Source of the DNA: Paramoeba atlantica
Lineage: Eukaryota > Protista > Discosea
DNA: 64,000 nucleotides
NCBI GenBank assembly: GCA_977017575.1
Contig: CDRNVI010000098.1
Coordinates: 271-64,270, forward strand
Direction of reading: 5' to 3'
Shown here: one piece after another, positions 2,407-39,971 of the stretch
Layout of the letters: every line of letters starts with the position of its first letter
Position numbering within the stretch: the first letter of the stretch is position 1
The notes under the pieces: generated by a model
What the model was told of the DNA's origin: nothing
The model's database searches: none
Seen by the model: the letters and a program-made list of their open reading frames with translations, nothing else
Translations under genes and position numbers: made by a program

Positions 2407-2874
2407 TGTTTTATCATGCACTTATAGTGCAGAGATTTACTCACCATGTCCTTATCCCGCATACGACGGGTGGATCATGTGAGGTTTCGTCCTCGCCGGA
2501 GGTGTGCGGGTGCGGAGAGCTGGCGTCCCAGGTGCAGAGAGCTCGGTTGTCATGTGCAGGTGCAGAGAGCCGGATGCGTAATCCCCATATTACAGTTTCG
2601 GGGGCAATCCGGGTGCAGAGAGCTGCGACAGAGCCGAGGTGCGGAGAGCTGGGCGACCGCCAGGTGCAGAGAGCCGAGTCTCGTCGGCGGAGGACACGTC
2701 TAGTGGTCCTCAAGGGAGGCCACCGTGACGCATGGCCCTCTCGGAGAGGAAAAAGACAAGTCGAAAAAAGCCGAGAGGGGGAAGCACACTCACCCCAGGG
2801 GAGTGAGTCGGGGAGGGGTGAAGGGGTGAAAGCGCGTCCCCTGCTTCAGCGACAAGAGGGACAGTTCCGACCTT
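2407..2874 (-). mobile_element. 5'-truncated SINE-like retroposon (unit A type)
   Basis: ~99% identical by eye to 33037-33505, with the same terminus (TGTTTTATCATGCAC on +) and a different, shorter opposite end. Inserted inside an LRR gene. Confidence 0.85.
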
Positions 2875-13790: not shown

Positions 13791-14392
13791 TACGTCACGA
13801 TTTGTTTTTCGAATTTTTCGCTTCTGAAAATCGAGCGCACGGAAGTAGTAGGGTATGCCGCGGCGATGATTTTCGCGATGAATCAAGGCGGGTGATAAAA
13901 TCGCGAAAAAAGGGGGGGTATGGTCGATGAAAGGAATACTCATGATTTTCATTTTCGCCAGGGGGTGTGATTAGACGAGTCGTTAGGTCCAGTAACTCTA
14001 CATCTAAGATTGTTGGGTTCGATTCCCACGGAGGTACTTTTCGTCCGGCTACACAGGGATTAGCTAAGAAGCTTGGGTCCACGATATCTGAACGGATTGG
14101 TCCATTTTTCAATCCCACCCAATAGCATGTGCGTTGGACGCGACTTGTAGTTTTTTTACACGAACTACATGCAGCACGAACGTCGTTAGTGGGAAGCAAG
14201 TTGCGAAGTCGAAGGAGTGGTAGGGTGAGGAGCGCAACGATGATGCGGATACCACTAAAAGAAAGCGACAACGCACTTTCGAATCTAGTGGGTATAAGAT
14301 GCACGATATTGATGATTGGTTGTTATCGTTTCATTGATGTTGAAATTTATTGCGGTCAATGCATAACCGGATTTCCTTATTTACGGAATTTC

Positions 14393-14657
14393 TTAATTTC
14401 GGTTCCTCTCTAATTACGGCTCCCCCTAATTACGGTTTCTCTTTAATTACGGTTCCTCTTTAATTACGGTTCCTCTCTAATTACGGCTCCCCCTAATTAC
14501 GGTTTCTCTCTAATTACGGTTCCTCTCTAATTACGGTTCCTCTCTAATTACGGTTCCTCTCTAATTACGGTTCCTCTCTAATTACGGTTCCTCTCTAATT
14601 ACGGTTCCTCTCTAATTACGGTTCCTCTCTAATTACGGTTTCTCTCTAATTACGGTT
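14393..14657. repeat. 17-bp minisatellite (TAATTACGGTTCCTCTC)n, ~16 copies
   Basis: Direct reading. Variant units 2-3 recur as units 6-7. No spacers. Confidence 0.95.
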
Positions 14658-23834: not shown

Positions 23835-26528
23835 GCGAGCGAACGCGGGCACAAATTAAGGAATGTCGCAAAGCGATCAAGCTGAGGGAGGAGGAAGCTA
23901 CAATGCAACGCAGAGAACTAGGTGAAAGATGGGCCGCACAGAGATTCTCTAGAAACTCGTGGACCGCGGCATCCGAAACGATTGATAAGCCTAACGGAAG
24001 AGAGGTAGAAAACACCGCATTTCCCAGCTGTGACAGATCTAGCATTGAATCATACTTTCAAGAAAGTTTTAACCCCAATGAGCAATCCTCGCGTCTCCCT
24101 CCTTCAGATCTACTAGGTCCGACAGCTAGCCAGCCAATGCAATGGAACCCGATCTCCCGTGAGGATGTCACTGCAGCTGTCACAATGAAGCGCAACGCCA
24201 GTTCTCCAGGAACCGACACGATAACTAACAAAATACTCAAAAACTGCCCATCGACACGCGAATACTTTGCATCTGTGTTCAACGATCTAATGACTTTCTC
24301 TGTGTGCCCGCTATCATGGAAAACCGCAGTAACCAGGCTGATATATAAAGCAGGTAGCAAAGAAAATCCGAAAAACTGGCGCCCGATCTCCCTTACTAGT
24401 GCTCTAGGTAAAACCTTTCACACGATCATCGCACATCGACTGACTCAACACCTGACTGAACACCATGTCATTGACCCTCAAATACAAAAAGGCTTTCTCC
24501 CTTCCATTAACGGTACACTGGAACACACCCAAACTCTTTGCTCACTCCTGCGACATTACCAGAAACACAAAACTCAATATTGCCTCGCACAACTCGACCT
24601 GAGCAATGCCTTCGGGTCTGTCCCACATCATATCATACATGCCGCTCTGAAATGGGCCCAAGTACCGCCGGAGGTCATCCACTACATCAAAAATACCCTA
24701 ACGGATGCGCACATGCGCATTAAGTGCTACGAAGGTCTTACGCAACCTATCTCTATACGAAAAGGTGTCCTCCAAGGGGATACCCTCTCTCCTATTGTCT
24801 TCCTGATAGTGATGGAAATTGTTTTGCGATATGTCCGATTCTCCTGCCCGCACTTCGGTATGAAACTCCCAAACGGTCTGAACAACTTCCTTAAGGCTTT
24901 TGCTGATGACTTAACTATTCTTACTGAAAGCGACGGAGACATGCAACACGCACTTGATGCAGTTACCAAAGTGCTGGGCGAGCTAAGCCTTAAGATTAAC
25001 GTGAACAAGAGTCGAATACAGTGCATGAGCACCCGTAAAGGCGAGGAACATCCAGGCTATATGACAAGACGTCCGGAAATAAAAGTCTACGGAGAGACCA
25101 TACCACACATATGTGATGTCGGTAGCACCTTCCTCGGGATGACCTTGGCACCGGGGTCCCAACAACTGAAAGAGCTGTTTCGTAAACTCGACTCAAAACT
25201 AAAACAGTGGATGGAGAACATCACACAAAGTGCCCACAGCCTTCCCGCTAAGCTTTTGATGTACAAAAATGCCGTTCTCTCACGTCTCCGTTTTCAGTTC
25301 GTTATTCACCCGTCGTTAATTTCACCCATCGTTATTCGGATCCGTGCTACGCCTTCAGAAGCGAGCCACGTCTCACATACGGAAATGGATAAACATGGCG
25401 CGTGCCGGAAGCTCTGAAGTCCTGTACTCTTGCCGAGGCTGGAACCTTACGAGTCTGTCAAAACTTTGGTACGAATGCACGGGAGAATCTATGACGCAAA
25501 TGAACAAATCCAAAGATCCAAATGTCCTACATACACTTCGCATACGCATACAGGAAGAGCAACACAAACGTCAAAGAGGTCAAATACGACCCGCTACTTT
25601 AATTACAGAACATCTGGATGATCCCCGAATGACTCGTCAACGGCTTCGTGAAGCACATGAGGAGGAAATAATCACGCGCTTGCAGCAACGCGCGCCCATC
25701 GCAGCCCTATGGTGGCAGTTTCCTACGGATCCAGAAATGGCCCAAGAATTCGCTTCTGCCATAAATGGGATCCGGAATGCGAAGATCTCCCGCTTTGTAG
25801 CATCCGTCATGACTCTTACACCGCTCCCTTCCCGAGCAGCGCTTGTTCAATGGGGCCGCAGCACCTACAGTAACATGAAATGCCCTATTTGCAACGACCG
25901 AGTGCAAACCGTCAGACACACCCTTTCCGCCTGCACCACTTCACTTCAGCAAGGACGATATACTTTCCGTCATAACCTTGTCCTTGCCGAATTTGCGAAA
26001 CATATTAGGGAAGCACAGGGAACTGAGTTTTCATATTTCGACCTACCAGGAGAGCGTAACCCACCAGCTTGGCTGAGGGAACACGATACACTGCTCCGTC
26101 CCGACGGTTACATTAAACTTCACAATGGGACAGAGTTCCTCATCGAACTCACAGTCCCATGGGAGGAGAATGCGGAGAACGCTCATCGGAGAAAATCCGA
26201 GAAGTACAACATCCTTTTACATACACGGCGACAGGAAAACCCGGACACCTACATAATAGCCTTTGAAATAGGTGCCCGGGGATTCCCCAATGGGTCATGC
26301 AAATATATTAATGCCATCTTTAACGGCGACCATATTTTGGCCACAAAGTGTCGAGAAAGCATGACACAGATGGCCCTCAGGGGGAGTTACATACTCTGGG
26401 CTCGCCGAAATGAGGCGACATGGTCGGAGGAGGAAACGTATTGACATTGTCTTCTAAAAAGGGGGCAATCCCGTTGAATGCGGGTCATACCCCCGACTTA
26501 CTCTACTGGAAAGTATGAAAAATAAAAA
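23835..26528 (+). mobile_element. 5'-truncated RLE non-LTR retrotransposon (RT + CCHC + PD-(D/E)xK endonuclease)
   Basis: WRPISL, DLSNAFGSVPH, GVLQGDTLSP, FADD (RT); CPIC..HTLSAC, RHNLVL, RPDG, IELTVPWEE (RLE). ~99% identical to 34112-36815 and ends GAAAAATAAAAA. Confidence 0.95.
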
Positions 26529-26655
26529 TCTATTTACAGCTATTTCTACTTTGGGACCCTGCACTTTGTGACATGTTTTGGCATTTGTACGACGACTGTT
26601 TCACTCCTTTCGTAACGAACCTGCAACAGGCATCTCCATTTATTTTAAATACATT

Positions 26656-27240
26656 TCAAGACTCCTTTTGAACCCATAATGCAGGAATCTTCCACCATGC
26701 TTTAGTTGGAAAAATACTGCGAGCTATTGTTCCATTAAGCCCAGGATTCCCCAGTATAGCGAGTGTAGCAGTGGGCTTTGCAAGACTCGAGTGCACCAGA
26801 CAGGAAAGATCCACAAATCCTGTGAATCGACAATTCGATACATTTAATATATTAATGTTGGGGGGTAGATGGGTCAAGTCCAGCTCCCCTGTAAATAAAT
26901 TGTTTTGAACCCACAAGTTCAGCAAAAGTTCAGGCAGGGCTGAGAAGTCAACATCGCCACCCAACTGATTCGTCATCACCCGGGCTCGTTGTATCGTACG
27001 CGGTAAATACAGCCAATGTAATGATCCTTTCAGCGCACGTGAATACCAGCTTACTTCGCTTATACTTTTAGATTCGTCACATTCCACACCGTTCCACTCG
27101 CAGGCAGGCGTATGCGTATCCCACGAGGGGTGCGGGTTCCTAACATCACGGACAAATTTAGCAAGTTCGTATTCTTGCGGCAGAGCAACGCCCTTTACCT
27201 TACCTGCGCGTGTCGCTGAGGATGTAGCATCGGCTGCCAT
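26656..27240 (-). CDS. small LRR protein (LPQEYELAKF subfamily)
   Basis: Cap TPACEWNGVEC plus LRRs. Intact. Confidence 0.85.
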   Translation of the reverse strand: MAADATSSATRAGKVKGVALPQEYELAKFVRDVRNPHPSWDTHTPACEWNGVECDESKSISEVSWYSRALKGSLHWLYLPRTIQRARVMTNQLGGDVDFSALPELLLNLWVQNNLFTGELDLTHLPPNINILNVSNCRFTGFVDLSCLVHSSLAKPTATLAILGNPGLNGTIARSIFPTKAWWKIPALWVQKES

Positions 27241-27597
27241 AATAGGAGCGAAGAACGTGTCATAATATTCTCGGGAGTGAACTCGGATGAATCAAGACTA
27301 GTTCTAGAACAAAAAACATTGCAATCGAAATTCTCTCAATCGTTTTCCGTACATTGTGCTGCCCCGCACATAAATAAACTTATAAATGACTATGCAGTTT
27401 ATCATACCCCCCGGTATTCTGCGAAAGTACGGATACCTTATGTTAAATAGCACTATGTAATTGCTGATTAAGTTGATTTGATGATCATGCGCTCGTTGGC
27501 ACAGATATAATTCCCCTATTGCGATGGCCGATATCACCACGAAGGTCCACTCGGGCCCTACATTGGGTCCACTGTAAACCCTGTTCTGGGTTAATGT

Positions 27598-28082
27598 GCC
27601 TATAGCTAATTATTGTGCCGGGGGGCACAATAAGTGGGAAGGACCGCTATTATTATGCCCCCCGCAAGTAAAAAGGGGTCTTAAGACAATTTTCGCGACT
27701 GCTGCAGACCAGGCATTGCGGTAGTCGAAAAATCTAAACCAAAAAATTCATCACGTTGGCTTGGCATTGACATTTCATAAGTATTTTCGGCCTCTATAAC
27801 AAAAAGGTACTGCGAAGCGGCGCCATTTTTTGGGGGGGGGCTTTTTCACGAAGGCTAATTAAAGGGCTGAAACCAGTAAAATGCAAACCCAGGTAAATAC
27901 AGTCAGGTCCCAAGAGAAACCAATGGCAAAGGTATCTGGCGTTTTTTCGGTTATGGAGTTCGCTGGAGGATCCGGGTAGGGGGTCTAGGAGGCTACAGTG
28001 GGATATATGGAAGGTATTGGGGGTGACTATAGCCACGTATTTTGCCTATAGCTGGTTATTGTGCCGGGGGGGGGCACAATTA
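27598..28082. repeat. element bounded by direct repeats that each contain a TTATTGTGCC-G(n)-GGCACAAT hairpin
   Basis: GCCTATAGCT..TTATTGTGCCGGGGGGCACAAT at 27598 and 28044. Confidence 0.6.
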
Positions 28083-28401
28083 CTCGGAACAGGGTTATTT
28101 TGTAATTAATGAGCAGATGTGGGTGAGGCCAAAACGAGATCACGCGAGATCACATGAGATCGCGCTAGCCCCTCAAATGAAACAGTTTGTTTTCGCAAAT
28201 CGAAGAAAAGAACCGAATTAGAAGTTTTAACTAGAAGACCTTTCTGTTGGAGAGGGGTTACGTTCTAAACATCGAAATGTAAAAGGGGTTCTGACAAGAC
28301 ACATGCATGTACGATCGAGGGGTCACCGCAACTACTTTGTCTCTTGCAAAAGGATTGATAAATACTTAAAGTACGTTACTTGTAGAAACTCTGAGAGAAT
28401 G

Positions 28402-29121
28402 TTACTCTACAACAACAAGATTCGTGTTCGAAACAATCTTAAGTATATTTTTTTTTAACTCTGGATGAAGTTTACTCACTGCTATTGTACCTTCGAGAAG
28501 GGTATTGTTCTCTAATGATAAACTCTCAAGGTTTTCGGGAAAAAATGAGAAATCAACGAATCCTTCAAAAGTATTGTCAGCCAAGTATAAAGCTTCCAGA
28601 GTGCGAGGAAGTGCCCCGAAATTAAGTTTTTCTGTCAATAAATTATCACTGATGTCCAAATACCACAAATCAGCAGGTAATTGTGTAAGGCATACATCAC
28701 CATACAATTTATTTCTCTCCAGCCATGCGGCATTCAAACATTGCGGGAGCTCTGTGAGATCCGGATTTCCTGTGAACGTATTTCTCCCCAGAAAAAAATC
28801 TGTCAACTCTTCTAATCGAGAAAAATCGCTGAGTCCTATTTCACCACCGACAGAGTTGTATTCAATGTCAAAACTGGAAACGGATCTTGGAATATACTGA
28901 AATTTCATGAATCCTGTTAACTTTTTACCACTCCAGCGTACCTCTTTAATTAGTTTATCTGCATCGCACGCTATGCCTTCCCATTCACAAGCCGAGCGGT
29001 CTGCGGTCCAACTCGCTGCTCGGTTATGTAAACCACTAGTGAGTCTCTCAAGATCGAATTCTTGTGGCACATTCACTGCACGAACCTTTGACGGACATGT
29101 TGAACGTTGAGGGTGATCCAT
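28402..29121 (-). CDS. small plant-type LRR protein (239 aa)
   Basis: VPQEFDLERL..SACEWEGIAC cap and six LRRs. Intact. Confidence 0.9.
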   Translation of the reverse strand: MDHPQRSTCPSKVRAVNVPQEFDLERLTSGLHNRAASWTADRSACEWEGIACDADKLIKEVRWSGKKLTGFMKFQYIPRSVSSFDIEYNSVGGEIGLSDFSRLEELTDFFLGRNTFTGNPDLTELPQCLNAAWLERNKLYGDVCLTQLPADLWYLDISDNLLTEKLNFGALPRTLEALYLADNTFEGFVDFSFFPENLESLSLENNTLLEGTIAVSKLHPELKKNILKIVSNTNLVVVE

Positions 29122-29420
29122 TTTGCGGGAGAAGGTTCAGATATTCGGTAGGTAAAATAGACAATAGAATATAAACTTATATTGCTCTTTTGGTAATCAA
29201 CATGCATGTAGCAGTGTTTGGAAGTTCGTCCCAATGCAATGCATCTCCAACCGGTAAAACCATTTGAAAAAATAATGAGTATCGTATACCATATACCAAG
29301 AGTCAAGTGTACCATATACCAGTGTAAAGTACAGGTTAAGGCGAACCTAAACATTTACTTACTCTTTCGGTTCGCTCATCTCGCCTGGTCGGCTTTGTAC
29401 ACAAATGGGATACTGCACCG

Positions 29421-31514
29421 CTACCCGTTGGCACGTCCCCACGTAGAGCAGCGAATGTACCTTGCCTGCACGCCCTCCTCCGTTTCCCCGTCGTCGTACT
29501 CTACGCGATATCGAATGTGTTGAGGCGACACCGATCGGTTCGGTTTCACAGGCGACAGCGCTATAATTTTTGCCCGACACCACAGTGTGCCTTGTTGCCA
29601 CCGCACCTCCACGGTATCCCCCACATTATATGGGGCTGCTTTTTGTGTGTTTTCAAATCCAATCGGGTTGGAAGGGGTTTCGAGGCTCAGCCTTGTTGTC
29701 GAAGCCATAAAGGTCTCGGATTTGGATGACTCGGAAAGTCCAGATACGCCGGTAAAGGGTAACAGGGTAGTGCTGGAGATATTCGAATCGGGTTTCACAT
29801 CCGTCCGTTTTCGTATACGCGTCGTTTCGGGGGAGTACACCTCCCTTCTCCTGTCACTGTCTTTGTTGGTAAAATTTGCTATCTTGGGCTCCGGCATGTC
29901 AGGAGCAGAGTGTGCAGTGACGTTCGGAGAGTGGGGATACTCGTTTTGATTTTTCGTCTTTCTGCATTCAGGCTCCTTGACGCAGCCATAATCCATATCC
30001 AAACAAAAGCGCGTGCCCTCCTCGAGATAATGTCGTGGATTCAGCACAATGAGCACCACCGAAATGTCATCATGGAAGTGACGACGTTTCCCACATGGGA
30101 TGGAGAGTAGATCGGGAAGACTCATGGCGTGAGCCGAGGCCACTTTGGTGCGCAGTGCGTGTCGGATTAAGTCCGCGGGCACGGCGCTGCACCACTCACT
30201 GGCATCCGCAGCCTCGGGTCGTGCAAAAACCCGGAAAGGGCTGGATGCGGTCGAAGAGTCACGATGATGTACAAAGGAGGGAAACTGAGACTCGGCTGGG
30301 GTGTGTTTGTGAGTTGAAGGCAATTCTTTTGACTCCGAGGACGCCTTAATTTGTTCGTCTCTCCACACAACGCTTTTGGAGTGATTCTCCAAGTCTCGGT
30401 CCGGCAGGCATTCATCGGTAAATCGTTGAGCGGCTCTCCTTAACAGCCCGTCCGTGAGATACACAATCTCCTCATTTGTGAGTAAATTATGTAACCCATC
30501 GGACATCAAAACTACAAAAAGATCACTAACGGAGACCAGACGAGAAGTAATCTCCGGGCTGGCATGGATATAAGGGATATAATCAGAATACGGCGTCATG
30601 GAGAGATTTTTATGTTTTAAATAACCGTCCCCGAGACTCCGGGTGACCATTAAGCTCCCCGCAACCCGCAAAGGGGCGCCTGGGACTTTCAAATGGAAAG
30701 GAGTACGGCGTAGGGGGGTGGGATCCGAGGTGCGGGCTTGAAGATCGGAAACCTCGGATTCGTTCTCAACATCGTGGTCCCGGGTCAGGGGAATGGCCTC
30801 GAGTATGGAGATGTATCCGTTCTGTGAGATAGAACAGCTGCGCGTGCTCGAAATCCTGGACACGGGTGGCTCCATAGCAGAAAACGAAAATGGCTTTGAT
30901 TTTTTTGACGCGGGTGAAATGATCCGGATTTTTTCTTCCTCCGCGAATTGCAAGGATGCGGATTGAGACGCCCTTTTTTCCTTTGAATTTTTACAGAACT
31001 GTGCTTCGTTATTTTCCAAATTAGCGTTTCCATACTCCCGAACAATACGCATCCTACTTCCTGACCTTCCTTTAGAAATTTTCATTTCCTTCGACATTTT
31101 CTCATTTTTTTCTGTTTCTTCTTCTCGCGTAATGCGACGGCGACACAACACAGCTCGACAGTCCCCGACATGGGCTGTCGTAATCCGCTCTTTTCCCAAC
31201 ACCAACGTCAGAGCACACGCCCCGGATGTCTTCTTCCGTACCCCCTCCGTAGCCAGAAATTCCCTGTCCATGTTCTCGTAGCTCGCGCGTAACGCTGCCT
31301 CGATGGAGCTCGCGTTTGTATTGTGGATTTGAGAAAAATAAGTATCCGCAATTTCGGGAAATTCTGCAGCACAATAGGAGGAGCATACCGGCCCTCCGTG
31401 GCCATCAAACAAGGAGAACAAGGCAAGGCTTTGGTTGCGAACATAGCCGAAGCAAGCGCGGTCCTCGTTGTGGGTGTTGGCTGCGACGGTCGCGAAAGAA
31501 ACAGGGCGCGTCAT
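29421..31514 (-). CDS. PP2C/PPM protein phosphatase with a C-terminal Tudor/Agenet-like domain
   Basis: NEDR, FDGHGG, HVGDCRAVL, LTRDH, TRSLGDGYLK, SDGL, RRHFHDDISV; tail YNVGDTVEVRW..W..AKI..YRVEYDDGETEEGV. Confidence 0.9.
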   Translation of the reverse strand: MTRPVSFATVAANTHNEDRACFGYVRNQSLALFSLFDGHGGPVCSSYCAAEFPEIADTYFSQIHNTNASSIEAALRASYENMDREFLATEGVRKKTSGACALTLVLGKERITTAHVGDCRAVLCRRRITREEETEKNEKMSKEMKISKGRSGSRMRIVREYGNANLENNEAQFCKNSKEKRASQSASLQFAEEEKIRIISPASKKSKPFSFSAMEPPVSRISSTRSCSISQNGYISILEAIPLTRDHDVENESEVSDLQARTSDPTPLRRTPFHLKVPGAPLRVAGSLMVTRSLGDGYLKHKNLSMTPYSDYIPYIHASPEITSRLVSVSDLFVVLMSDGLHNLLTNEEIVYLTDGLLRRAAQRFTDECLPDRDLENHSKSVVWRDEQIKASSESKELPSTHKHTPAESQFPSFVHHRDSSTASSPFRVFARPEAADASEWCSAVPADLIRHALRTKVASAHAMSLPDLLSIPCGKRRHFHDDISVVLIVLNPRHYLEEGTRFCLDMDYGCVKEPECRKTKNQNEYPHSPNVTAHSAPDMPEPKIANFTNKDSDRRREVYSPETTRIRKRTDVKPDSNISSTTLLPFTGVSGLSESSKSETFMASTTRLSLETPSNPIGFENTQKAAPYNVGDTVEVRWQQGTLWCRAKIIALSPVKPNRSVSPQHIRYRVEYDDGETEEGVQARYIRCSTWGRANG

Positions 31515-31741
31515 ATAAAATCGTACAAAGTATACCGCAAGGTGATATAAATGGTAAGTCGGAGTTGTGAGTTAGAACTAATTCTTCTTAAACCACCGGT
31601 GTGAACTGTAGTTAAGGTTGGTGAAAGAAAATGATAATATAATAATAATAATAATGATAATATAATAATAAAGTTTACTTTCTGCAATATTACACATATA
31701 ACTATGAACAAAAACTAGAAAGATATAGAAAATTTATTGCT

Positions 31742-32075
31742 TTAGTCTTCCACGGTTATCAGCGTGTTCACCCAACTTTTCTGTCCAGTGCAGCAGTGTT
31801 TCTGTCCCTCTAATAGCCAACGGTAGCCCTGTAAGACGAACCTGTTCATACATTTCTCGATTATCGTCCAACAACAAACCATGCAATCCCCACGGAAGAG
31901 CAGCAAAATCGAAAAACCCCGAAAAACGATTTTTAGATATACTGTAGATAAGAAGGCTAACGATCGAGGGAGAAGTGATACATCAATTTCCCCAGTAAAT
32001 AGATTTCCTGTTAAACAAAACGATTCCAGTCCAGGGGGCAAAACTGTAAAGTCCACTGACCCCGCAAGTCCGCAA
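31742..32075 (-). pseudogene. LRR gene fragment
   Basis: DFTVLPPGLESFCLTGNLFTGEIDVSLLPRSL, then degenerates. Confidence 0.65.
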
Positions 32076-32207
32076 TAAGCAGCAGAAAAATGAATGATTA
32101 TTGATGGAAAGTGCTCTCACTTTAGGTTTCCACCCAGATCGTACAAGGCCCATTGTATTTCATCGATGTTACCAGAGGAGCTTTGCATTGTTTTTATGCC
32201 ATTCCAC

Positions 32208-32471
32208 TCACATACAGGATCCTAACATTATTCGAAATTCTTCATTATCAATAGCATTCTTACGTATGTATTTTATACGTTCTAACCCTCCTGTCTCCCG
32301 GTGGCGTTTAACCCATCGAGAGACAGTTGCTTCACTGCATTTCGTAAAAGCAGCACTGTCTGCAATCGAACGCCCCTGGTTTTGTATCTCATGGACGCAA
32401 AATACACGTGTTTCATAAGTGATTTGTTGCGTCCAGAAGGTGCGCCTCTGGCGGCGAAGTGTTTTCGGCAT
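32208..32471 (-). pseudogene. Tc1/IS630-like transposase HTH fragment
   Basis: QGRSIADSAAFTKCSEATVSRWVKRHRETG resembles a transposase N-terminal HTH. No catalytic domain is visible. Confidence 0.5.
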
Positions 32472-33036
32472 AAAATGGGTTAGAAAGAGTTAAATGGTAT
32501 TTTATTCATAGTTTGATGCGCTAGAATGACAAAAAATGATAAAAATCTGATTTTTTGCAGAATTTGTGGTTAAGAATTTCAGTAATTTATTCTCAAGTCG
32601 TCATATCTGCTTCAGGGGCGGCAACAATGGTGCCAGTAGTCTTAAAATTTCGTGATCTGTTGAATGCCGTAGGAATTAGGTCAAAAGCTCGCACGATACA
32701 AATTTTAGACCCCCTCCACCTTTTTCGTGACCCCCCCTGTATAGTAGCGATGCCGCATTTTATGCATACCCCCTTACTATTCGCAATAAAAAAAGTTAAG
32801 AACACGATCCTACGAATATTGAGACGGATAGGTTCGCGTAATAAATACGTTTCAAGACTCTTCTTGAATCCACGACGGAGGAATGTTCCACCATGCTCGA
32901 GTAGGCATGTGACTCGGGCTATTGTTCCATTAAGCCCAGGATTCCCTGTTATGTCGAATCCAGCAACAGGCTTTGCAAGATTCGAGTGCACCAGACAGGA
33001 AAGATCCACAAATCCGGTGAATTGACAATTGGATAG

Positions 33037-33610
33037 TGTTTTATCATGCACTTATAGTGCAGAGATTTACTCACCATGTCCTTATCCCGCATACGACGGG
33101 TGGATCATGTGAGGTTTCGTCCTCGCCGGAGGTGTGCGGGTGCGGAGAGCTGGCGTCCCAGGTGCAGAGAGCTCGGTTGTCATGTGCAGGTGCAGAGAGC
33201 CGGATGCGTAATCCCCATATTACAGTTTCGGGGGCAATCCGGGTGCAGAGAGCTGCGACAGAGCCGAGGTGCGGAGAGCTGGGCGACCGCCAGGTGCAGA
33301 GAGCCGAGTCTCGTCGGCGGAGGACACGTCTAGTGGTCCTCAAGGGAGGCCACCGTGACGCATGGCCCTCTCGGAGAGGAAAAAGACAAGTCGAAAAAAA
33401 GCCGAGAGGGGGAAGCACACTCACTCCAGGGGAGTGAGTCGGGGAGGGGTGAAGTGGTGAAAGCGCGTCCCCTGCTTCAGCGACAAGAGGGACAGTTCCG
33501 ACCTTAGTGCCGGCCGGCAACGGGCATGAAAATACAGTAAGAGTATGCCCGTTGCCGGGGAAAGAAAGGATGAACTAAGGAAAAAGTACCAACAAGGTAC
33601 AGAAACTGTA
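33037..33610 (-). mobile_element. SINE-like unit A, apparently complete, with an SL-core head
   Basis: Minus strand begins TACAGTTTCTGTACCTTGTTG, has a 14-bp hairpin and six GCTCTCYGCACC motifs, and ends in the two-hairpin tail ..CCCGTCGTATGCGGG..CTCTGCACTATAAGTGCATGATAAAACA. Confidence 0.8.
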
Positions 33611-34051
33611 GGTCATGATCATACGCTCGTGGCGCAGAGATACGTCTCTCTGTGTGACGGCCGATACCATCGGCGCATGACCCGCATACGACGGGTGTCA
33701 CACAGAGAGTGGAGTGCGAGGTAGGAGACGAGACGCCCATCGGTCATGCTACAGCACGTATAGCCATGGTTCATGCTGCAACACGGTCAAGCCGTGGGTT
33801 CATGCTGTCAGATGGTCTATCGTGGATCATGATGCATCATGGGGAGGTCCGTTACCGCCGCACTCGCTACAGCATGTAGGGAGAGAGGGGTGCAAGTTCG
33901 CATCCCCTATACACGCATACAACGTGTCCTCCCGCTGTAGCACGCCCAGTGGTCCTCAAGGGAGGCCACCATGGCGCATAGCTCCCGGGAGAAGAAAGCA
34001 CGAGAAGGAGAGAGCCGGGCTTTAGCACAGCCGGGCTTTAGAGAGCCGGGC
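33611..34051 (-). mobile_element. SINE-like unit B (diverged relative, 5'-truncated) fused head-to-tail to unit A
   Basis: Shares CACCCGTCGTATGCGGG, GTGGCCTCCCTTGAGGACCACT and an ATCTCTGC-hairpin-TGAT tail with unit A. Three AAAGCCCGGCT repeats lie at its 5' junction. Confidence 0.7.
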
Positions 34052-34196
34052 TTTAACACATCAATGTTGGGAGGTAAATGAGCAAAGTCCAGCTCGCCTG
34101 TGAATAAATTGTTTTTATTTTTTCATACTTTCCAGTAGAGTAAGTCGGGGGTATGACCCGCATTCAACGGGATTGCCCCCTTTTTAGAAGACAATG

Positions 34197-37100
34197 TCAA
34201 TACGTTTCCTCCTCCGACCATGTCGCCTCATTTCGGCGAGCCCAGAGTATGTAACTCCCCCTGAGGGCCATCTGTGTCATGCTTTCTCGACACTTTGTGG
34301 CCAAAATATGGTCGCCGTTAAAGATGGCATTAATATATTTGCATGACCCATTGGGGAATCCCCGGGCACCTATTTCAAAGGCTATTATGTAGGTGTCCGG
34401 GTTTTCCTGTCGCCGTGTATGTAAAAGGATGTTGTACTTCTCGGATTTTCTCCGATGAGCGTTCTCCGCATTCTCCTCCCATGGGACTGTGAGTTCGATG
34501 AGGAACTCTGTCCCATTGTGAAGTTTAATGTAACCGTCGGGACGGAGCAGTGTATCGTGTTCCCTCAGCCAAGCTGGTGGGTTACGCTCTCCTGGTAGGT
34601 CGAAATATGAAAACTCAGTTCCCTGTGCTTCCCTAATATGTTTCGCAAATTCGGCAAGGACAAGGTTATGACGGAAAGTATATCGTCCTTGCTGAAGTGA
34701 AGTGGTGCAGGCGGAAAGGGTGTGTCTGACGGTTTGCACTCGGTCGTTGCAAATAGGGCATTTCATGTTACTGTAGGTGCTGCGGCCCCATTGAACAAGC
34801 GCTGCTCGGGAAGGGAGCGGTGTAAGAGGGAAGGGAGCGGTGTCATGACGGATGCTACAAAGCGGGAGATCTTCGCATTCCGGATCCCATTTATGGCAGA
34901 AGCGAATTCTTGGGCCATTTCTGGATCCGTAGGAAACTGCCACCATAGGGCTGCGATGGGCGCGCGTTGCTGCAAGCGCGTGATTATTTCCTCCTCATGT
35001 GCTTCACGAAGCCGTTGACGAGTCATTCGGGGATCATCCAGATGTTCTGTAATTAAAGTAGCGGGTCGTATTTGACCTCTTTGACGTTTGTGTTGCTCTT
35101 CCTGTATGCGTATGCGAAGTGTATGTAGGACATTTGGATCTTTGGATTTGTTCATTTGCGTCATAGATTCTCCCGTGCATTCGTACCAAAGTTTTGACAG
35201 ACTCGTAAGGTTCCAGCCTCGGCAAGAGTACAGGACTTCAGAGCTTCCGGCACGCGCCATGTTTATCCATTTCCGTATGTGAGACGTGGCTCGCTTCTGA
35301 AGGCGTAGCACGGATCCGAATAACGATGGGTGAAATTAACGACGGGTGAATAACGAACTGAAAACGGAGACGTGAGAGAACGGCATTTTTGTACATCAAA
35401 AGCTTAGCGGGAAGGCTGTGGGCACTTTGTGTGATGTTCTCCATCCACTGTTTTAGTTTTGAGTCGAGTTTACGAAACAGCTCTTTCAGTTGTTGGGACC
35501 CCGGTGCCAAGGTCGTCCCGAGGAAGGTGCTACCGACATCACATATGTGTGGTATGGTCTCTCCGTAGACTTTTATTTCCGGACGTCTTGTCATATAGCC
35601 TGGATGTTCCTCGCCTTTACGGGTGCTCATGCACTGTATTCGACTCTTGTTCACGTTAATCTTAAGGCTTAGCTCGCCCAGCACTTTGGTAACTGCATCA
35701 AGTGCGTGTTGCATGTCTCCGTCGCTTTCAGTAAGAATAGTTAAGTCATCAGCAAAAGCCTTAAGGAAGTTGTTCAGACCGTTTGGGAGTTTCATACCGA
35801 AGTGCGGGCAGGAGAATCGGACATATCGCAAAACAATTTCCATCACTATCAGGAAGACAATAGGAGAGAGGGTATCCCCTTGGAGGACACCTTTTCGTAT
35901 AGAGATAGGTTGCGTAAGACCTTCGTAGCACTTAATGCGCATGTGCGCATCCGTTAGGGTATTTTTGATGTAGTGGATGACCTCCGGCGGTACTTGGGCC
36001 CATTTCAGAGCGGCATGTATGATATGATGTGGGACAGACCCGAAGGCATTGCTCAGGTCGAGTTGTGCGAGGCAATATTGAGTTTTGTGTTTCTGGTAAT
36101 GTCGCAGGAGTGAGCAAAGAGTTTGGGTGTGTTCCAGTGTACCGTTAATGGAAGGGAGAAAGCCTTTTTGTATTTGAGGGTCAATGACATGGTGTTCAGT
36201 CAGGTGTTGAGTCAGTCGATGTGCGATGATCGTGTGAAAGGTTTTACCTAGAGCACTAGTAAGGGAGATCGGGCGCCAGTTTTTCGGATTTTCTTTGTTA
36301 CCTGCTTTATATATCAGCCTGGTTACTGCGGTTTTCCATGATAGCGGGCACACAGAGAAAGTCATTAGATCGTTGAACACAGATGCAAAGTATTCGTGTG
36401 TCGATGGGCAGTTTTTGAGTATTTTGTTAGTTATCGTGTCGGTTCCTGGAGAACTGGCGTTGCGCTTCATTGTGACAGCTGCAGTGACATCCTCACGGGA
36501 GATCGGGTTCCATTGCATTGGCTGGCTAGCTGTCGGACCTAGTAGATCTGAAGGAGGGAGACGCGAGGATTGCTCATTGGGGTTAAAACTTTCTTGAAAG
36601 TATGATTCAATGCTAGATCTGTCACAGCTGGGAAATGCGGTGTTTTCTACCTCTCTTCCGTTAGGCTTATCAATCGTTTCGGATGCCGCGGTCCACGAGT
36701 TTCTAGAGAATCTCTGTGCGGCCCATCTTTCATCTAGATCTCTGCGTTGCATTGTAGCTTCCTCCTCCCTCAGCTTGATCGCTTTGCGACATTCCTTAAT
36801 TTGTGCCCGCGTTCTCTCGCGTTCCGCCCGGTTCCTCGTGTAACGTAGCGATCGTTTCATCGTTTCTAAATGGTGTTTGAGATCGGTTACGGTTCTTTCC
36901 GCCGCGAGTGGTCGGTATCTACGTCGTGCATGTCCGGTACTGGTCCTTATCAGGAAACCTTTCGTCGGATTTGCTTCTATGGCGACTTCATGTGCTGAGA
37001 CTGCTAATGCGGCACTGAGTAATTCCGCGTTTCGTACAGCTGCCTCTTTATCCGGTGTAGGGGTAAGTAGTTGAATGCATCTCTCTTTCGCTCTCGATTC

Positions 37101-39206
37101 GACAATCCGCCACTGTACCTCATTTAGTCGTATCGTAACCTTACCTCCGCTTATGGCTTCGTGCTTCTGGAGAAGTTGCGTTTGCAATCTGGTTCGAGAG
37201 TAGGCTTCTTGCTCGGGGGAGGCAGGGTACTCTGCAGCCGGAGGAGGGCTGTTCGGGTGCTGGATGGCTGCTGCATCGGTCTCTGAGTCTTCGGTGTCTC
37301 TTTGCGTAGTGTTCCTCCGGGCATACACTGGTCCGTATACTTTGCAGCACTTGTGGGCACATTCCACTTTGTTTCGACATGTGTGCTGACACGGGTGCAA
37401 ACTAAGCTTCGTAGGTGCCCTACTGATAGTTTGGATGCGGTGAGGGGATGCTTCTCGGCGCGGGTTCTTTTCATAGTGTACGTCTGAGGGATCTTCCTCC
37501 CGCTTATGTAGTGTAATATGCAGATGTTGAAGGAGGGGCACATCCCGTCCGGCAAGAACCTTGAGGATTGCGCGGCCGAGTGCTCCCGCGGAGCTGTATG
37601 ACTCACCAAGTTTGAAGGTATCATCTTTGTAGAGGGAAGTCCAGCTGGCGTGCCGTCGGTGTTCTTGCGCGTGCGCTTGTTTTACAACCCTTATGTAGTC
37701 ACATCCCTGGTGATCCATGAGCTCGTCCAGTGAGGCTGGCTGAACAATTAGGTCGTGGGAGCTTCCGTTCCCTGAAAGCATTTTACTGAGTGCCGCTTGC
37801 GCTGCTTGATGAGAAGCAATTCTGGCCTTGACTAGAGGGGATTCGCTGGCGGCCCGGACGTCTGGAAAATACCGCCAGGTGAGATCTGTGAGTGTTCTTA
37901 TTTTTAAGGGGCGCGCCCGGCTTTGGACAAAATGAAGATTTTGTTTGTGTTGAAGCGATGCACTCAGTCCAGTAGGTGTTGTGGCGGCGTCATCTAGGTT
38001 TCCCGAGTGTTGGTTGTTGAACACCCAGGTGGGAACTTCGTCCGTGCTTTCTTCCAGTAGGATGTGATGGTCTACGGAGACGCTAGGTACCGGTAGTGGG
38101 GAAGGGAGGCGAGCGAGCACCTCGGGATACAGAGATTCTGTATTTTGGTTTTCGTATCCAGGGATCTCGTCGTTTTTAGTGGCACTGCATGAGGTAGCTA
38201 TCGAGGCGTCGTTTTTGCTGTCGCAGTTTGGTTGCTCGGGAGCGCGATTTTCAAGGTGCAATAGTGGATTCGTACAATTGGGTTCATCATTCTCTGCTTG
38301 TACATTATGCGCGCTTGGAGCTTTGGGGGTAAGGAAGTCTATGTACCAGAGAAAGATGCGTAGTGGTAATTTTACAAGTTCCAAAATGATGGTCGATGTT
38401 GATGTCTTCTTGGTCTTCGCAAGTAGCAACCAAAGTTCATCGTATTTCCGTGAGACAGGCGTTTTGAAGTTGGAGAGGGTTAGATAGATCTGGTTGATTG
38501 CCACTGGAACTAGAGGTATGCTGCTTCGCAAAAGACTGAGCGCATACCATGTGAGTGCGAATATTAAGTGGACAAGTGTGCAGAATAGTTTCATGAGGTA
38601 CTTCACGTTATGAAATAGTATTGCAACCTTGAGGGTCTGCTCCGTGTAGGGGTTGCTCGTTTGATCTGGAGTAGTGTGTACTAAGTGGCGTTTGCAGCAG
38701 GCATGCTTGCATGTGTTTTTGTTTAGACATTTATGTTTACATGGCTTCGTTTGAGGTGGTTCTGTAGAGTTTCAGCAATATGCAGGTTGGGTTACGAAGT
38801 AGGGTATTTTCATGAATATTGTCGCCAGTAATGCTTCGATGATGCAATATACTCTCCCGAAGAATCTCGGTGGGGTGCTTATATTCGTCAAGTTCGGTGC
38901 TGTAGGAATATCGATTTTGTTTATGCGAGGCTGTTGCCTCTTACAACACGGGTGAAGACATGTTCGTTTGTTGAGGCACCTGTGTTTACATGGTGTTCCG
39001 TGGGTCATGGGGGTTTGCGGTACCATATTTGCAGTCACTAGTTCGGTTGGCGTGACGCATGATGGTGGTTCGGAGGGGGCACCATTCTCGTCGACGGGAC
39101 GTCCATGGTCTAAGAGATCAACGGTTGACATATCAACGCCGCGTGGTCCTCCCGTAAGGTCCTGCGGCGCATCAGCATGAGTGCAATGTGAAGGGGGTCG
39201 CGTCAT
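34197..39206 (-). pseudogene. retrotransposon polyprotein, interrupted
   Basis: First ATG after the SL at 39206, in-frame TGA at 38772-38774, a frameshift near 35315-35335 shared with the other copy, and a private 14-nt duplication near 34810-34845. Confidence 0.85.
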
Positions 39207-39234
39207 TGTAACGATAAAGATAAGAGAAAAAAAA

Positions 39235-39266
39235 CAACAAGGTACAGAAACTGTATCTTTATCGTT
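39235..39266 (-). other. spliced-leader-like exon at the 5' end of the retrotransposon
   Basis: AACGATAAAGATACAGTTTCTGTACCTTGTTG matches the kinetoplastid SL layout (AACG..ACAGTTTCTGTAC..TTG). The 3' 21 nt recur at 33590-33610. Confidence 0.75.
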
Positions 39267-39971
39267 CAAATTACACGTGTTTCATAAGTGATTTGTTGCG
39301 TCCAGAAGGTGCGCCTCTGGCGGCGAAGTGTTTTCGGCATAAAATGGGTTAGAAAGAGTTAAATGGTATTTTATTCATAGTTTGATGCGCTAAAATGACA
39401 AAAAATGATAAAAATCTGATTTTTTGCAGAATTTGTGGTTAAGAATTTCAGTAATTTATTCTCAAGTCGTCATATCAGCTTCAGGGGCGGCAACAATGGT
39501 GCCAGTAGTCTTAAAATTTCGAGATCTGTTGAATGCCGTAGGAATTAGGTCAAAAGCTCGCACGATACAAATTTTAGACCCCCTCCACCTTTTTCGTGAC
39601 CCCCCCTGTATAGTAGCGATGCCGCATTTTATGCATACCCCCCTACTATTCGCAATAAAAAAAGTTAAGAACACGATCCTACGAATATTGAGACGCATAG
39701 GTTCGCGTAATAAATACGTTTCAAGACTCTTCTTGAATCCACGACGGAGGAATGTTCCACCATGCTCGAGTAGGCATGTGACTGCGGGCTATTGTTCCAT
39801 TAAGCCCAGGATTCCCTGTTATGTCGAATCCAGCAACAGGCTTTGCAAGATTCGAGTGCACCAGACAGGAAAGATCCACAAATCCGGTGAATTGACAATT
39901 GGATACATTTAACACATCAATGTTGGGAGGTAAATGGGCAAAGTCCAGCTCTCCTGTGAATAAATTGTTTT
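39267..39971. repeat. right copy of the ~705-bp direct repeat
   Basis: Matches 32398-34115 after removing the 33036-34051 insertion. Confidence 0.9.

Follow-up and report, generated by a model that had tools for sequence, protein, structure and literature searches.

Non-coding retroposons that share a two-hairpin 3′ module, spliced-leader 5′ ends, and leucine-rich repeat targets with R2-like LINEs

We analyzed a 64,000-nucleotide stretch of contig CDRNVI010000098.1 from the Paramoeba atlantica assembly GCA_977017575.1 (positions 271 to 64,270; hereafter, the window), in which two non-coding repeats, units A and B, lie beside a long interspersed nuclear element (LINE) that encodes a reverse transcriptase (RT) and a restriction-like endonuclease (RLE). 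Units A and B are real dispersed non-coding retroposons with fixed 3′ ends, some copies of which are 5′-truncated. We refer to them and their relatives as short interspersed nuclear elements (SINEs). Because SINEs and LINEs have a common two-hairpin end and the same kind of target gene, the SINEs most likely borrow the copying enzyme of the LINEs.

Repeated elements of the window

Self-comparison of the window located two copies of a LINE family, F1, that are 99.2% identical to one another; the minus-strand copy (34116-39266) is full-length and the plus-strand copy (23835-26536) is 5′-truncated. A gene coding for leucine-rich repeats (LRRs) is split by a 1015-bp block (33037-34051), and an unsplit paralogue of this gene lies at 39267-39971. 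Read along the minus strand, the block consists of stuttered repeats, a truncated B (34019 to 33611), and then directly a complete A (33610 to 33037). The features are as follows; each 3′ module is described in the next section, and z denotes the folding z score.

34116-39266, minus strand: full-length F1 LINE with a single open reading frame (ORF), frameshifted in this copy
39235-39266, minus strand: 32-nt spliced-leader (SL) remnant (AACGATAAAGATACAGTTTCTGTACCTTGTTG), the 5′ end of this LINE copy
34113-34187, minus strand: F1 3′ module, comprising enclosing stem P1, hairpin 1, spacer, hairpin 2, and an A-rich tail
23835-26536, plus strand: second F1 copy, 5′-truncated, 99.2% identical to the minus-strand copy
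26454-26528, plus strand: 3′ module of the plus-strand LINE copy; hairpin 1 at 26468-26486, hairpin 2 and tail at 26498-26528; minimum free energy (MFE) -21.6 kcal/mol, z -3.0
33037-33610, minus strand: complete non-coding SINE A of 574 nt, in which an SL remnant, head hairpins, the 5′ box, a body containing six GCTCTCYGCACC repeats, and the 3′ module follow one another
33590-33610, minus strand: SL remnant (TACAGTTTCTGTACCTTGTTG), the 5′ end of SINE A
33320-33364, minus strand: 5′ box of SINE A (GCGTC..GGCCTCCCTTGAGGACCAC..GACGT), homologous to the LINE ORF start
33037-33118, minus strand: 3′ module of SINE A; hairpin 1 at 33084-33102, hairpin 2 and tail TGATAAAACA at 33037-33067; z -3.9
33611-34019, minus strand: 5′-truncated copy of SINE B, tail-to-head with SINE A
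33936-33980, minus strand: 5′ box of SINE B
33611-33712, minus strand: 3′ module of SINE B; 13-bp enclosing stem, hairpin 1 at 33679-33697, extra hairpin GCCGAT/ATCGGC, hairpin 2 and tail at 33611-33642; z -3.8
34020-34051, minus strand: 5′ junction, 32 nt, with two extra stuttered copies of the 5′-terminal 12 to 16 nt of the truncated B (GCCCGGCTCTCTAAA / GCCCGGCTGTGCTAAA)
2407-2874, minus strand: second copy of SINE A, 5′-truncated, with the same 3′ terminus as the other copy; within another LRR motif (flank ..GAGAATTATTTAACAGGA..)
39905-39908, minus strand: empty target site as preserved in the LRR gene paralogue (gttaaa-TG-tatccaattgtcaattcaccgg); its filled counterpart, joined at 33035/34052, is without TG and without duplication

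A first-pass annotation, made from the window alone, had noted that A occurs twice with an identical 3′ terminus and differing 5′ ends. This is correct: 2407-2874 and 33037-33505 are 99.4% identical and have a common 3′ end, the former being 5′-truncated. The extents of the units were amended, with full-length A running over 33037-33610 from its SL remnant and the window B being a 5′-truncated copy. We searched the 45.7-Mb assembly of the window with the 1015-bp block and scored 40 of 396 candidates; unit B gave 282 candidates, of which 40 were scored. The scored candidates of the block search yielded 52 matches, most of which span query positions 442-1015 (the 574-nt unit) at 94 to 100% identity. 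Truncated copies begin at query position 466, 547, 572, or 579; nearly all matches share the terminal 3′ base, and their flanks are different and unrelated from copy to copy. For B, all 40 full-length matches, on approximately 35 contigs, are 98 to 100% identical and end at TGAT or TGATCATGACC, and the ends of these 40 matches fall within 10 nt of one another. The 3′ terminus is thus common to most of the 52 A matches and to every full-length B match.

The longest ATG-initiated ORF in A and B is at most 85 amino acids. Longer B copies (locus L007) and the related families C and D (L070) provide full-length members with an A-type head. This head consists of an SL remnant and hairpins; the SINEs gave no sign of a polymerase III-type head (tRNA, 7SL, 5S, or small nuclear RNA), and an Rfam search of the whole window gave nothing at gathering score, nor did 26300-34300 give any family at E ≤ 1. 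In four sequence runs, whose contigs are of unknown kind, A and B are repeated 10 to 100 times deeper than their flanks, and the empty paralogous site is confirmed in the same runs.

Some features of A stand apart from this comparison. Its body (33139-33304, minus strand) holds six copies of GCTCTC(T/C)GCACC, a motif that includes CTCTGCAC, the 5′ half of hairpin 2. In its head (33540-33575), a long hairpin differs between families in a compensatory way, with CCGGcAACGGGCA/TGCCCGTTgCCGG in A versus CCGGaAACGGG/CCCGTTtCCGG in others (L070, L043, and L073). A minority of A copies (L023, L028, and L029) is without GTACTTTTTCCTTAG, exactly as if trans-spliced at an internal polypyrimidine-AG there.

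Shared 3′ module, 5′ ends, and target sites

In the LINE 3′ UTR (26454-26528, plus strand; mirror copy 34113-34187, minus strand), GGGGG-CAAT-CCCGT-TGAAT-GCGGG-TCATA-CCCCC is followed by CTC-TACT-GGAA-AGTA-TGA-AAAAATAAAA. The 3′ end of A (minus strand, 33118 to 33037) has CCCGT-CGTAT-GCGGG within CTCACATG..CATGGTGAG, then CTC-TGCAC-TATAA-GTGCA-TGA-TAAAACA. The end of B (33712 to 33611) has CCCGT-CGTAT-GCGGG-TCAT in a 13-bp stem (CTCTCTGTGTGAC/GTCACACAGAGAG), then CTC-TGCGC-CACGA-GCGTA-TGA-TCATGACC. The two-hairpin architecture that the first-pass annotation had described, with different closing stems and compensatory stems in hairpin 2, is therefore present as stated, and all of its sequences were verified in the window, as was the agreement of B hairpin 1 plus TCAT with the LINE at 17 of 19 nt.

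The same order of parts recurs in all 12 LINE families sampled (F1-F12). An enclosing stem surrounds hairpin 1, (N)nCGT-N5-GCG(N)n, and an optional extra hairpin; the other stem arm is followed by a single-stranded spacer, by CTC-T[stem-loop-stem]A-TGA (TAGA or TTGA in two families), and by a tail. The tail, of 5 to 14 nt, is specific to each family and in some cases consists of a microsatellite of variable length, (TCA)n, (TAAA)n, or (TA)n. The same module design underlies SINEs A, A2, B, B2, and D. MFE folding recovered this architecture in 17 of 17 independent modules, with z scores of -1.9 to -5.4 (at or below -3.0 in 15 of the 17); the enclosing stem has a sequence unique to each family and is paired in all.

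Both hairpins covary. In an ungapped alignment of hairpin 1, the inner pairs around the 5-nt loop are nearly invariant (U.G 16/16, G-C 16/16, and C-G 15/16), whereas pair 4 is CG in six modules, GC in six, AU in two, and UA in two, and so is paired in 16 of 16. The covariation score was 0.325 versus 0.091 for shuffles (0/500), with slid controls at or below 0.113. For hairpin 2 we used a plain MAFFT alignment with no fitting to structure: 91% of cells are paired, both sides changed in five of six pairs, and the score was 0.667 versus 0.224 for shuffles (0/500; slid controls ≤0.202). Covariation, previously proposed from three sequences, is thus significant for both hairpins in a larger alignment of 12 LINE and four to five SINE families. 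A loose pattern, CGTN5GCG..CTCT..ATGA, has 442 matches in the genome compared with 129 for a reversed control, and the matches listed add compensated variants.

The LINE partners form a diverse superfamily. At least 100 RT matches occur in the genome, at 43 to 100% identity, and F1-F12 are 54 to 100% identical in RT to the window element. Eleven ORFs were translated; F12, known only as a 3′ fragment, was not. An intact relative (L051:1859-6703, minus strand) encodes one 1614-amino acid protein with, in order, three CxHxC..CxHxCC knuckles, RT, a CCHC motif, and RLE. Its RT domain matches Pfam RVT_1 (E = 3.3e-31), and its best solved relatives are R2 proteins including R2Bm (E = 2.9e-26; L1 ORF2p, 1.5e-15). 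A homologue search returned only metagenomic relatives of approximately 30% identity and then arthropod R2 proteins, with no named member of the CRE clade among them. CCHC (CxxC..H..C) and the RLE motif RH[ND]..RPDG..ELT..K..KY are present in 10 of the 11 translated families; the F8 copy has CCHC only because a premature stop deletes its C-terminus. A weak Pfam match to the PD-(D/E)xK family L_protein_N (E = 9.5e-4) is below the cut-off, and Pfam gave no match in the LINE protein to Exo_endo_phos, the N-terminal apurinic/apyrimidinic endonuclease (APE). Earlier assignment of the LINE to the RLE type agrees with these domains and relatives. We also observed that the knuckle, CxHxC(5-7)CxHxCC, occurs in two to five copies in every LINE family, at the position of the C2H2/Myb domains of R2 (window 37341-38993; L051-L070). 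Knuckle copy number varies by family and could set target choice.

Similarity between LINEs and SINEs extends to their 5′ ends. The SL 29-mer GATAAAGATACAGTTTCTGTACCTTGTTG occurs 674 times in the genome. Two of 20 fetched SL loci (L047/L050) are true SL RNA genes, in which AACTTTAACGATAAAGATACAGTTTCTGTACCTTGTTG is followed by GTATGAGAAGCTTCG. A 5′-truncated SL opens full-length A copies and, in 10 of the 11 LINE families for which a 5′ end was available, the full-length LINEs too (15 of 20 loci retrieved), the LINE order being truncated SL, short 5′ UTR, and ATG. Since full-length A and the LINEs begin with a truncated SL, they were most likely copied from trans-spliced RNAs. A kinetoplastid-type placement is suggested by the 39-nt SL together with the SL RNA intron start GTATGAGAAGC; a published prokinetoplastid SL differs from the SL of this genome (PMC7859406). 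For a PP2C gene in the window, no named sequence proved to be closely related.

Behind the SL by 90 to 130 nt, at the LINE ORF start, lies a 5′ box, GCGYCRC-AGGACCTCCCTCGAGGACCAC-GCGRCGT, found in 9 or 10 of 11 LINE families and also in the A to D SINEs. The helix that closes the box shows covariation (83.8% paired; score 0.403 versus 0.221, 0/500; slid controls ≤0.151). By analogy with R2, the box may be where protein binds the 5′ part of the RNA. The first-pass description of the units as otherwise unrelated does not hold in this respect, as A and B share the SL head and the 5′ box with the LINEs as well.

Other SL copies in the genome have a different context. Many full-SL copies (L031-L050; for example, L033, L040, and L041) have poly(A) directly before them and a 5′ UTR and ORF after them, and these loci are head-to-tail arrays of retrocopied, trans-spliced, polyadenylated mRNAs. 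Partial SL reiterations directly behind the SL occur in L054 (oriented approximately 1688-1725), L051, L055, L056, and L062. The reiteration TTG+TTTCTGTACCTTGTTG corresponds to resplicing at an AG inside an earlier retrocopied SL, like the relict leaders of dinoflagellates; other reiterations (TACCTTGTTG and CTTGTTG) are without a preceding AG.

The insertions share a target. We defined the target motif as AAY-NNN-(TTY/CTN/TTR)-NNN-GGN, which encodes N-x-F/L-x-G of the LRR repeat (an example stretch is ..TTAAATGTATCCAATTGTCAATTCACCGG..), and took the background from random positions in the same sequences. Among unique 3′ flanks, the motif is present in 12 of 29 for the SINEs and 13 of 36 for the LINEs, compared with a background of 1.16% (p ~1e-16 each). 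Its offset from the junction is 7 to 13 nt for SINEs and peaks at 9 to 12 nt for LINEs, with two outliers at 1 and 3. Insertions of both kinds at the LRR motif are always in sense orientation. For the LINEs, this preference is a bias and not an absolute rule. The empty site reads gttaaa-TG-tatccaattg, and the filled site is minus TG and without a target-site duplication (TSD), matching the 2-bp target deletion characteristic of R2Bm and R2-like integration. It is common for the tail of one element to run directly into the truncated SL of the next, as from B to A in the window and in further cases in L070, L073, L003, and L022. By analogy with R2, such tail-to-SL junctions would be the expected product of end-to-end template jumping by an R2-type RT.

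The neighborhood of the block has further peculiarities. The full-length LINE lies between exact direct duplications of approximately 705 bp of LRR gene (32398-33035 plus 34052-34115 versus 39267-39971, 98.9% identical). The borders of this duplication are both LINE junctions, so that it amounts to an unusually long TSD, unlike the 2-bp deletion at the SINE site. On contig C101, a paralogous or allelic region (L008 and L009) shares with the window the LINE and, at the identical LRR site, the A insertion, but has no B; its junction, gttaaaGA-TACAG.. compared with gttaaa-[B]-TACAG.. in the window, is not explained by simple later gain or loss of B. Elsewhere in the window, a 17-nt tandem repeat (CTAATTACGGTTCCTCT; approximately 16 copies, 14375-14657) is unrelated to the LINEs and SINEs.

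Partner assignment, alternative explanations, and proposed mechanism

We consider it likely, on the sequence evidence, that A and B are non-autonomous retroposons copied by the RT and endonuclease of the diverse R2-like RLE LINE superfamily. The first-pass proposal of a partnership with an RLE element thus gains support in silico from the LRR target, the 2-bp deletion without a TSD, the SL ends, and the covarying 5′ box.

Alternatively, the shared module could be inherited baggage, A and B being internally deleted LINE descendants (like the short internally deleted elements, SIDEs, of R2) that kept it for 3′-end formation, stability, or export and not as a handle for RT. Such an origin fits the retention of a LINE 5′ piece, the 5′ box, by the SINEs. 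However, the helices are kept paired by compensatory changes between SINE families and across LINE families whose RT identity falls to approximately 50%, the spacing between module and integration junction is always short and fixed, and ordinary mRNA retrocopies in the same genome end in poly(A) without the module. The SINE bodies also lack LINE similarity apart from SL, box, and module: beyond these parts, BLAST found no similarity of SINE A to D bodies to 11 LINE families. We therefore regard this explanation as unlikely. The parts of the SINEs that correspond to a LINE are the SL, the ~40-nt box, and the 3′ module only; the SINEs may or may not have arisen through simple internal deletion.

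It is less probable still that A and B were moved by other machinery, such as the poly(A)-dependent activity behind the SL-poly(A) retrogene arrays, other LINEs, or tyrosine-recombinase elements, which would make the likeness to RLE tails irrelevant. Retroelements of other types do occur in the genome, as do hundreds of retrocopies that begin with an SL and lie directly behind poly(A). But A and B lack poly(A) and end in tails built like those of the RLE LINEs, and they equal these LINEs in LRR target bias, offset, and orientation; the 2-bp deletion without a TSD at the sole empty site is also typical of R2-like integration. Least credible, and in our estimate very improbable, is that A and B are not mobile and represent fragments of the SL RNA gene repeats, or else segmental duplications dispersed through recombination. 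A superficially resembles an SL RNA gene, starting with SL then GT and carrying a T7 run approximately 215 nt in, and the window region has a paralogue on contig C101 (L008 and L009). Against this, the intron of the true SL RNA gene differs (GTATGAGAAGCTTCG...), the copies of A and B are spread over dozens of contigs, where their ends are exact to the base and their flanks unrelated, the paralogous site is empty, and 5′ truncations retain the 3′ end. We rejected the reading of A and B as SL RNA gene fragments.

Several observations weigh against copying by the RLE LINEs. SINE tails are only 54 to 71% identical to every sampled LINE (best, A2 to F2 at 0.71 and A to F2 at 0.69), and the resemblance of A to family F7, at 26 of 28 nt, is confined to hairpin 2. 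Since no LINE has a near-identical tail, no specific partner was identified, and recognition would need shape and a few invariant bases; the LINE sample comprises 12 families only. Approximately 60% of insertions lie outside any recognizable LRR motif, and only one empty site was available. Shuffle controls overstate the significance of covariation because the families are related by descent; the slid controls agree. Finally, among runs on record as RNA, none was found that contains A, which bears on transcription, trans-splicing, and the RNA 3′ end. Nothing particularly supports the window family F1 as the specific partner of A or B, and no near-identical tail occurs among the 12 sampled families.

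If the LINE enzyme does copy both kinds of element, a cycle can be proposed. Elements in sense orientation within transcribed LRR genes would be transcribed as part of host units, and their RNAs would be trans-spliced; full-length LINE and SINE copies do open with truncated SL DNA. The LINE protein, by analogy with R2, would recognize the structured 3′ module, which is conserved with compensatory changes in 12 LINE and 5 SINE families and is always 5 to 14 nt from the element end. Its endonuclease may nick approximately 9 to 12 nt upstream of the Asn codon in L-x-x-N-x-F-x-G, in keeping with the shared target bias. Target-primed reverse transcription (TPRT) would start within the short family-specific tail, where small variation in repeat number is observed. 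On reaching the 5′ end of an RNA, the RT may often jump to the 3′ end of a second RNA, which would create tail-to-head chimeras like B-A, of which several junctions are present. Integration, as seen once, removes 2 bp and makes no duplication. A wider version of this scheme, which we offer as tentative and doubtful, is that the 3′ module and the 5′ box are the two places on the RNA bound by the protein of an R2-like machine whose target has shifted from rDNA or SL genes to LRR codons. Leader, 5′ site, and 3′ site would then make the SINEs natural minimal cargo RNAs, knuckle number would set the target, and repeated cutting and filling in sense orientation would secure transcription and drive turnover of the large, receptor-like LRR family.

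Relation to known retrotransposons and significance

Structure-matched LINE/SINE pairs are textbook for vertebrate LINEs with an AP endonuclease. In stringent pairs (eel UnaL2/UnaSINE1 and CR1/L2-type), the SINE carries the 3′ recognition stem-loop of the LINE, and RT starts just downstream in a repeat-like tail. The LINEs of these pairs have AP endonucleases, and the SINEs have polymerase III (tRNA or 5S) heads and near-identical tails. Here, in contrast, the LINE is of the RLE type, no polymerase III head is detectable, and the tails are alike in architecture and invariant bases only (54 to 71%).

In R2, 3′ sequences are needed for RNA binding and the start of TPRT, and non-autonomous derivatives exist (PMC3414825). 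Like R2 and the SIDEs of Drosophila, the present elements combine a single-ORF RT that has C-terminal CCHC and restriction-like endonuclease domains with site-biased insertion, tail-to-head chimeras as from template jumping, and short non-coding derivatives that keep the ends (PMC3414825). They also have a structured, non-polyadenylated 3′ UTR, which in R2 is needed for protein binding and TPRT and here may serve likewise (PMC3414825). Unlike R2, which targets 28S rDNA, they use a protein-coding LRR motif of a large gene family; their 5′ end is a copy of the host SL rather than the product of a hepatitis delta virus-like ribozyme, and their N-terminus has two to five CxHxC..CxHxCC knuckles instead of C2H2/Myb. 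Unlike R2 and SIDEs, at least 12 LINE families co-exist, and the SINE bodies are unrelated to the LINE and probably number hundreds of copies.

The clades of transposable elements recognized in trypanosomatids are INGI, CRE, VIPER, and TATE, and in a 2025 survey of 57 trypanosomatid genomes, the ingi clade alone is listed with non-autonomous elements (PMC12278014). Like ingi/RIME, L1Tc/NARTc, and SIDER, A and B are non-autonomous retroposons of an SL-using euglenozoan and share terminal sequences with an autonomous LINE (PMC12278014); those elements, however, are APE-bearing and share a 5′ Pr77 signature, poly(A) tails, and TSDs, none of which is present here. The CRE clade (SLACS, CZAR, and CRE1/2) likewise has RT and RLE in one ORF, zinc-finger-like motifs, and an association with the SL (PMC12278014). 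CRE elements sit at a fixed position in SL RNA genes and end in poly(A), whereas the present elements have the SL as their own 5′ end, target LRR genes, and terminate in a structured 3′ module; the RLE LINE copies lie in LRR genes and other sites, not in SL RNA genes. DNA copies of trans-spliced RNAs with a 5′ leader, sometimes with reiterated partial leaders, are known as the SL-tagged retrogenes of dinoflagellates (PMC6050394, PMC5585692). Those are retrocopies of host genes, whereas here transposons and their SINEs carry the tag.

We found no report of a structure-matched LINE/SINE pair such as A/B and the RLE LINEs for kinetoplastids or their relatives, in agreement with the first-pass statement that a pairing with an RLE element is not known from kinetoplastids; the trypanosomatid survey lists ingi-clade partners only (PMC12278014). 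The shared LRR target, the shared truncated SL 5′ ends, and the second covarying box at the 5′ end go beyond what had been noted before. Non-autonomous partners of RLE LINEs are rare, R2 SIDEs being one documented case. The 12 LINE and at least five SINE families constitute a natural mutagenesis series in which three helices are kept by compensatory change around few invariant bases, namely U.G/G-C/C-G in hairpin 1 and CUCU...AUGA around hairpin 2. The RNA recognition code of an R2-like enzyme is therefore directly testable, and R2 proteins are in development as gene-insertion tools, hence the relevance of such a code. These elements indicate that a retrotransposon can obtain its 5′ end from the trans-splicing system of its host and that an RLE element can specialize on a protein-coding repeat motif, and they reveal a large LRR gene family under remodeling by these insertions.

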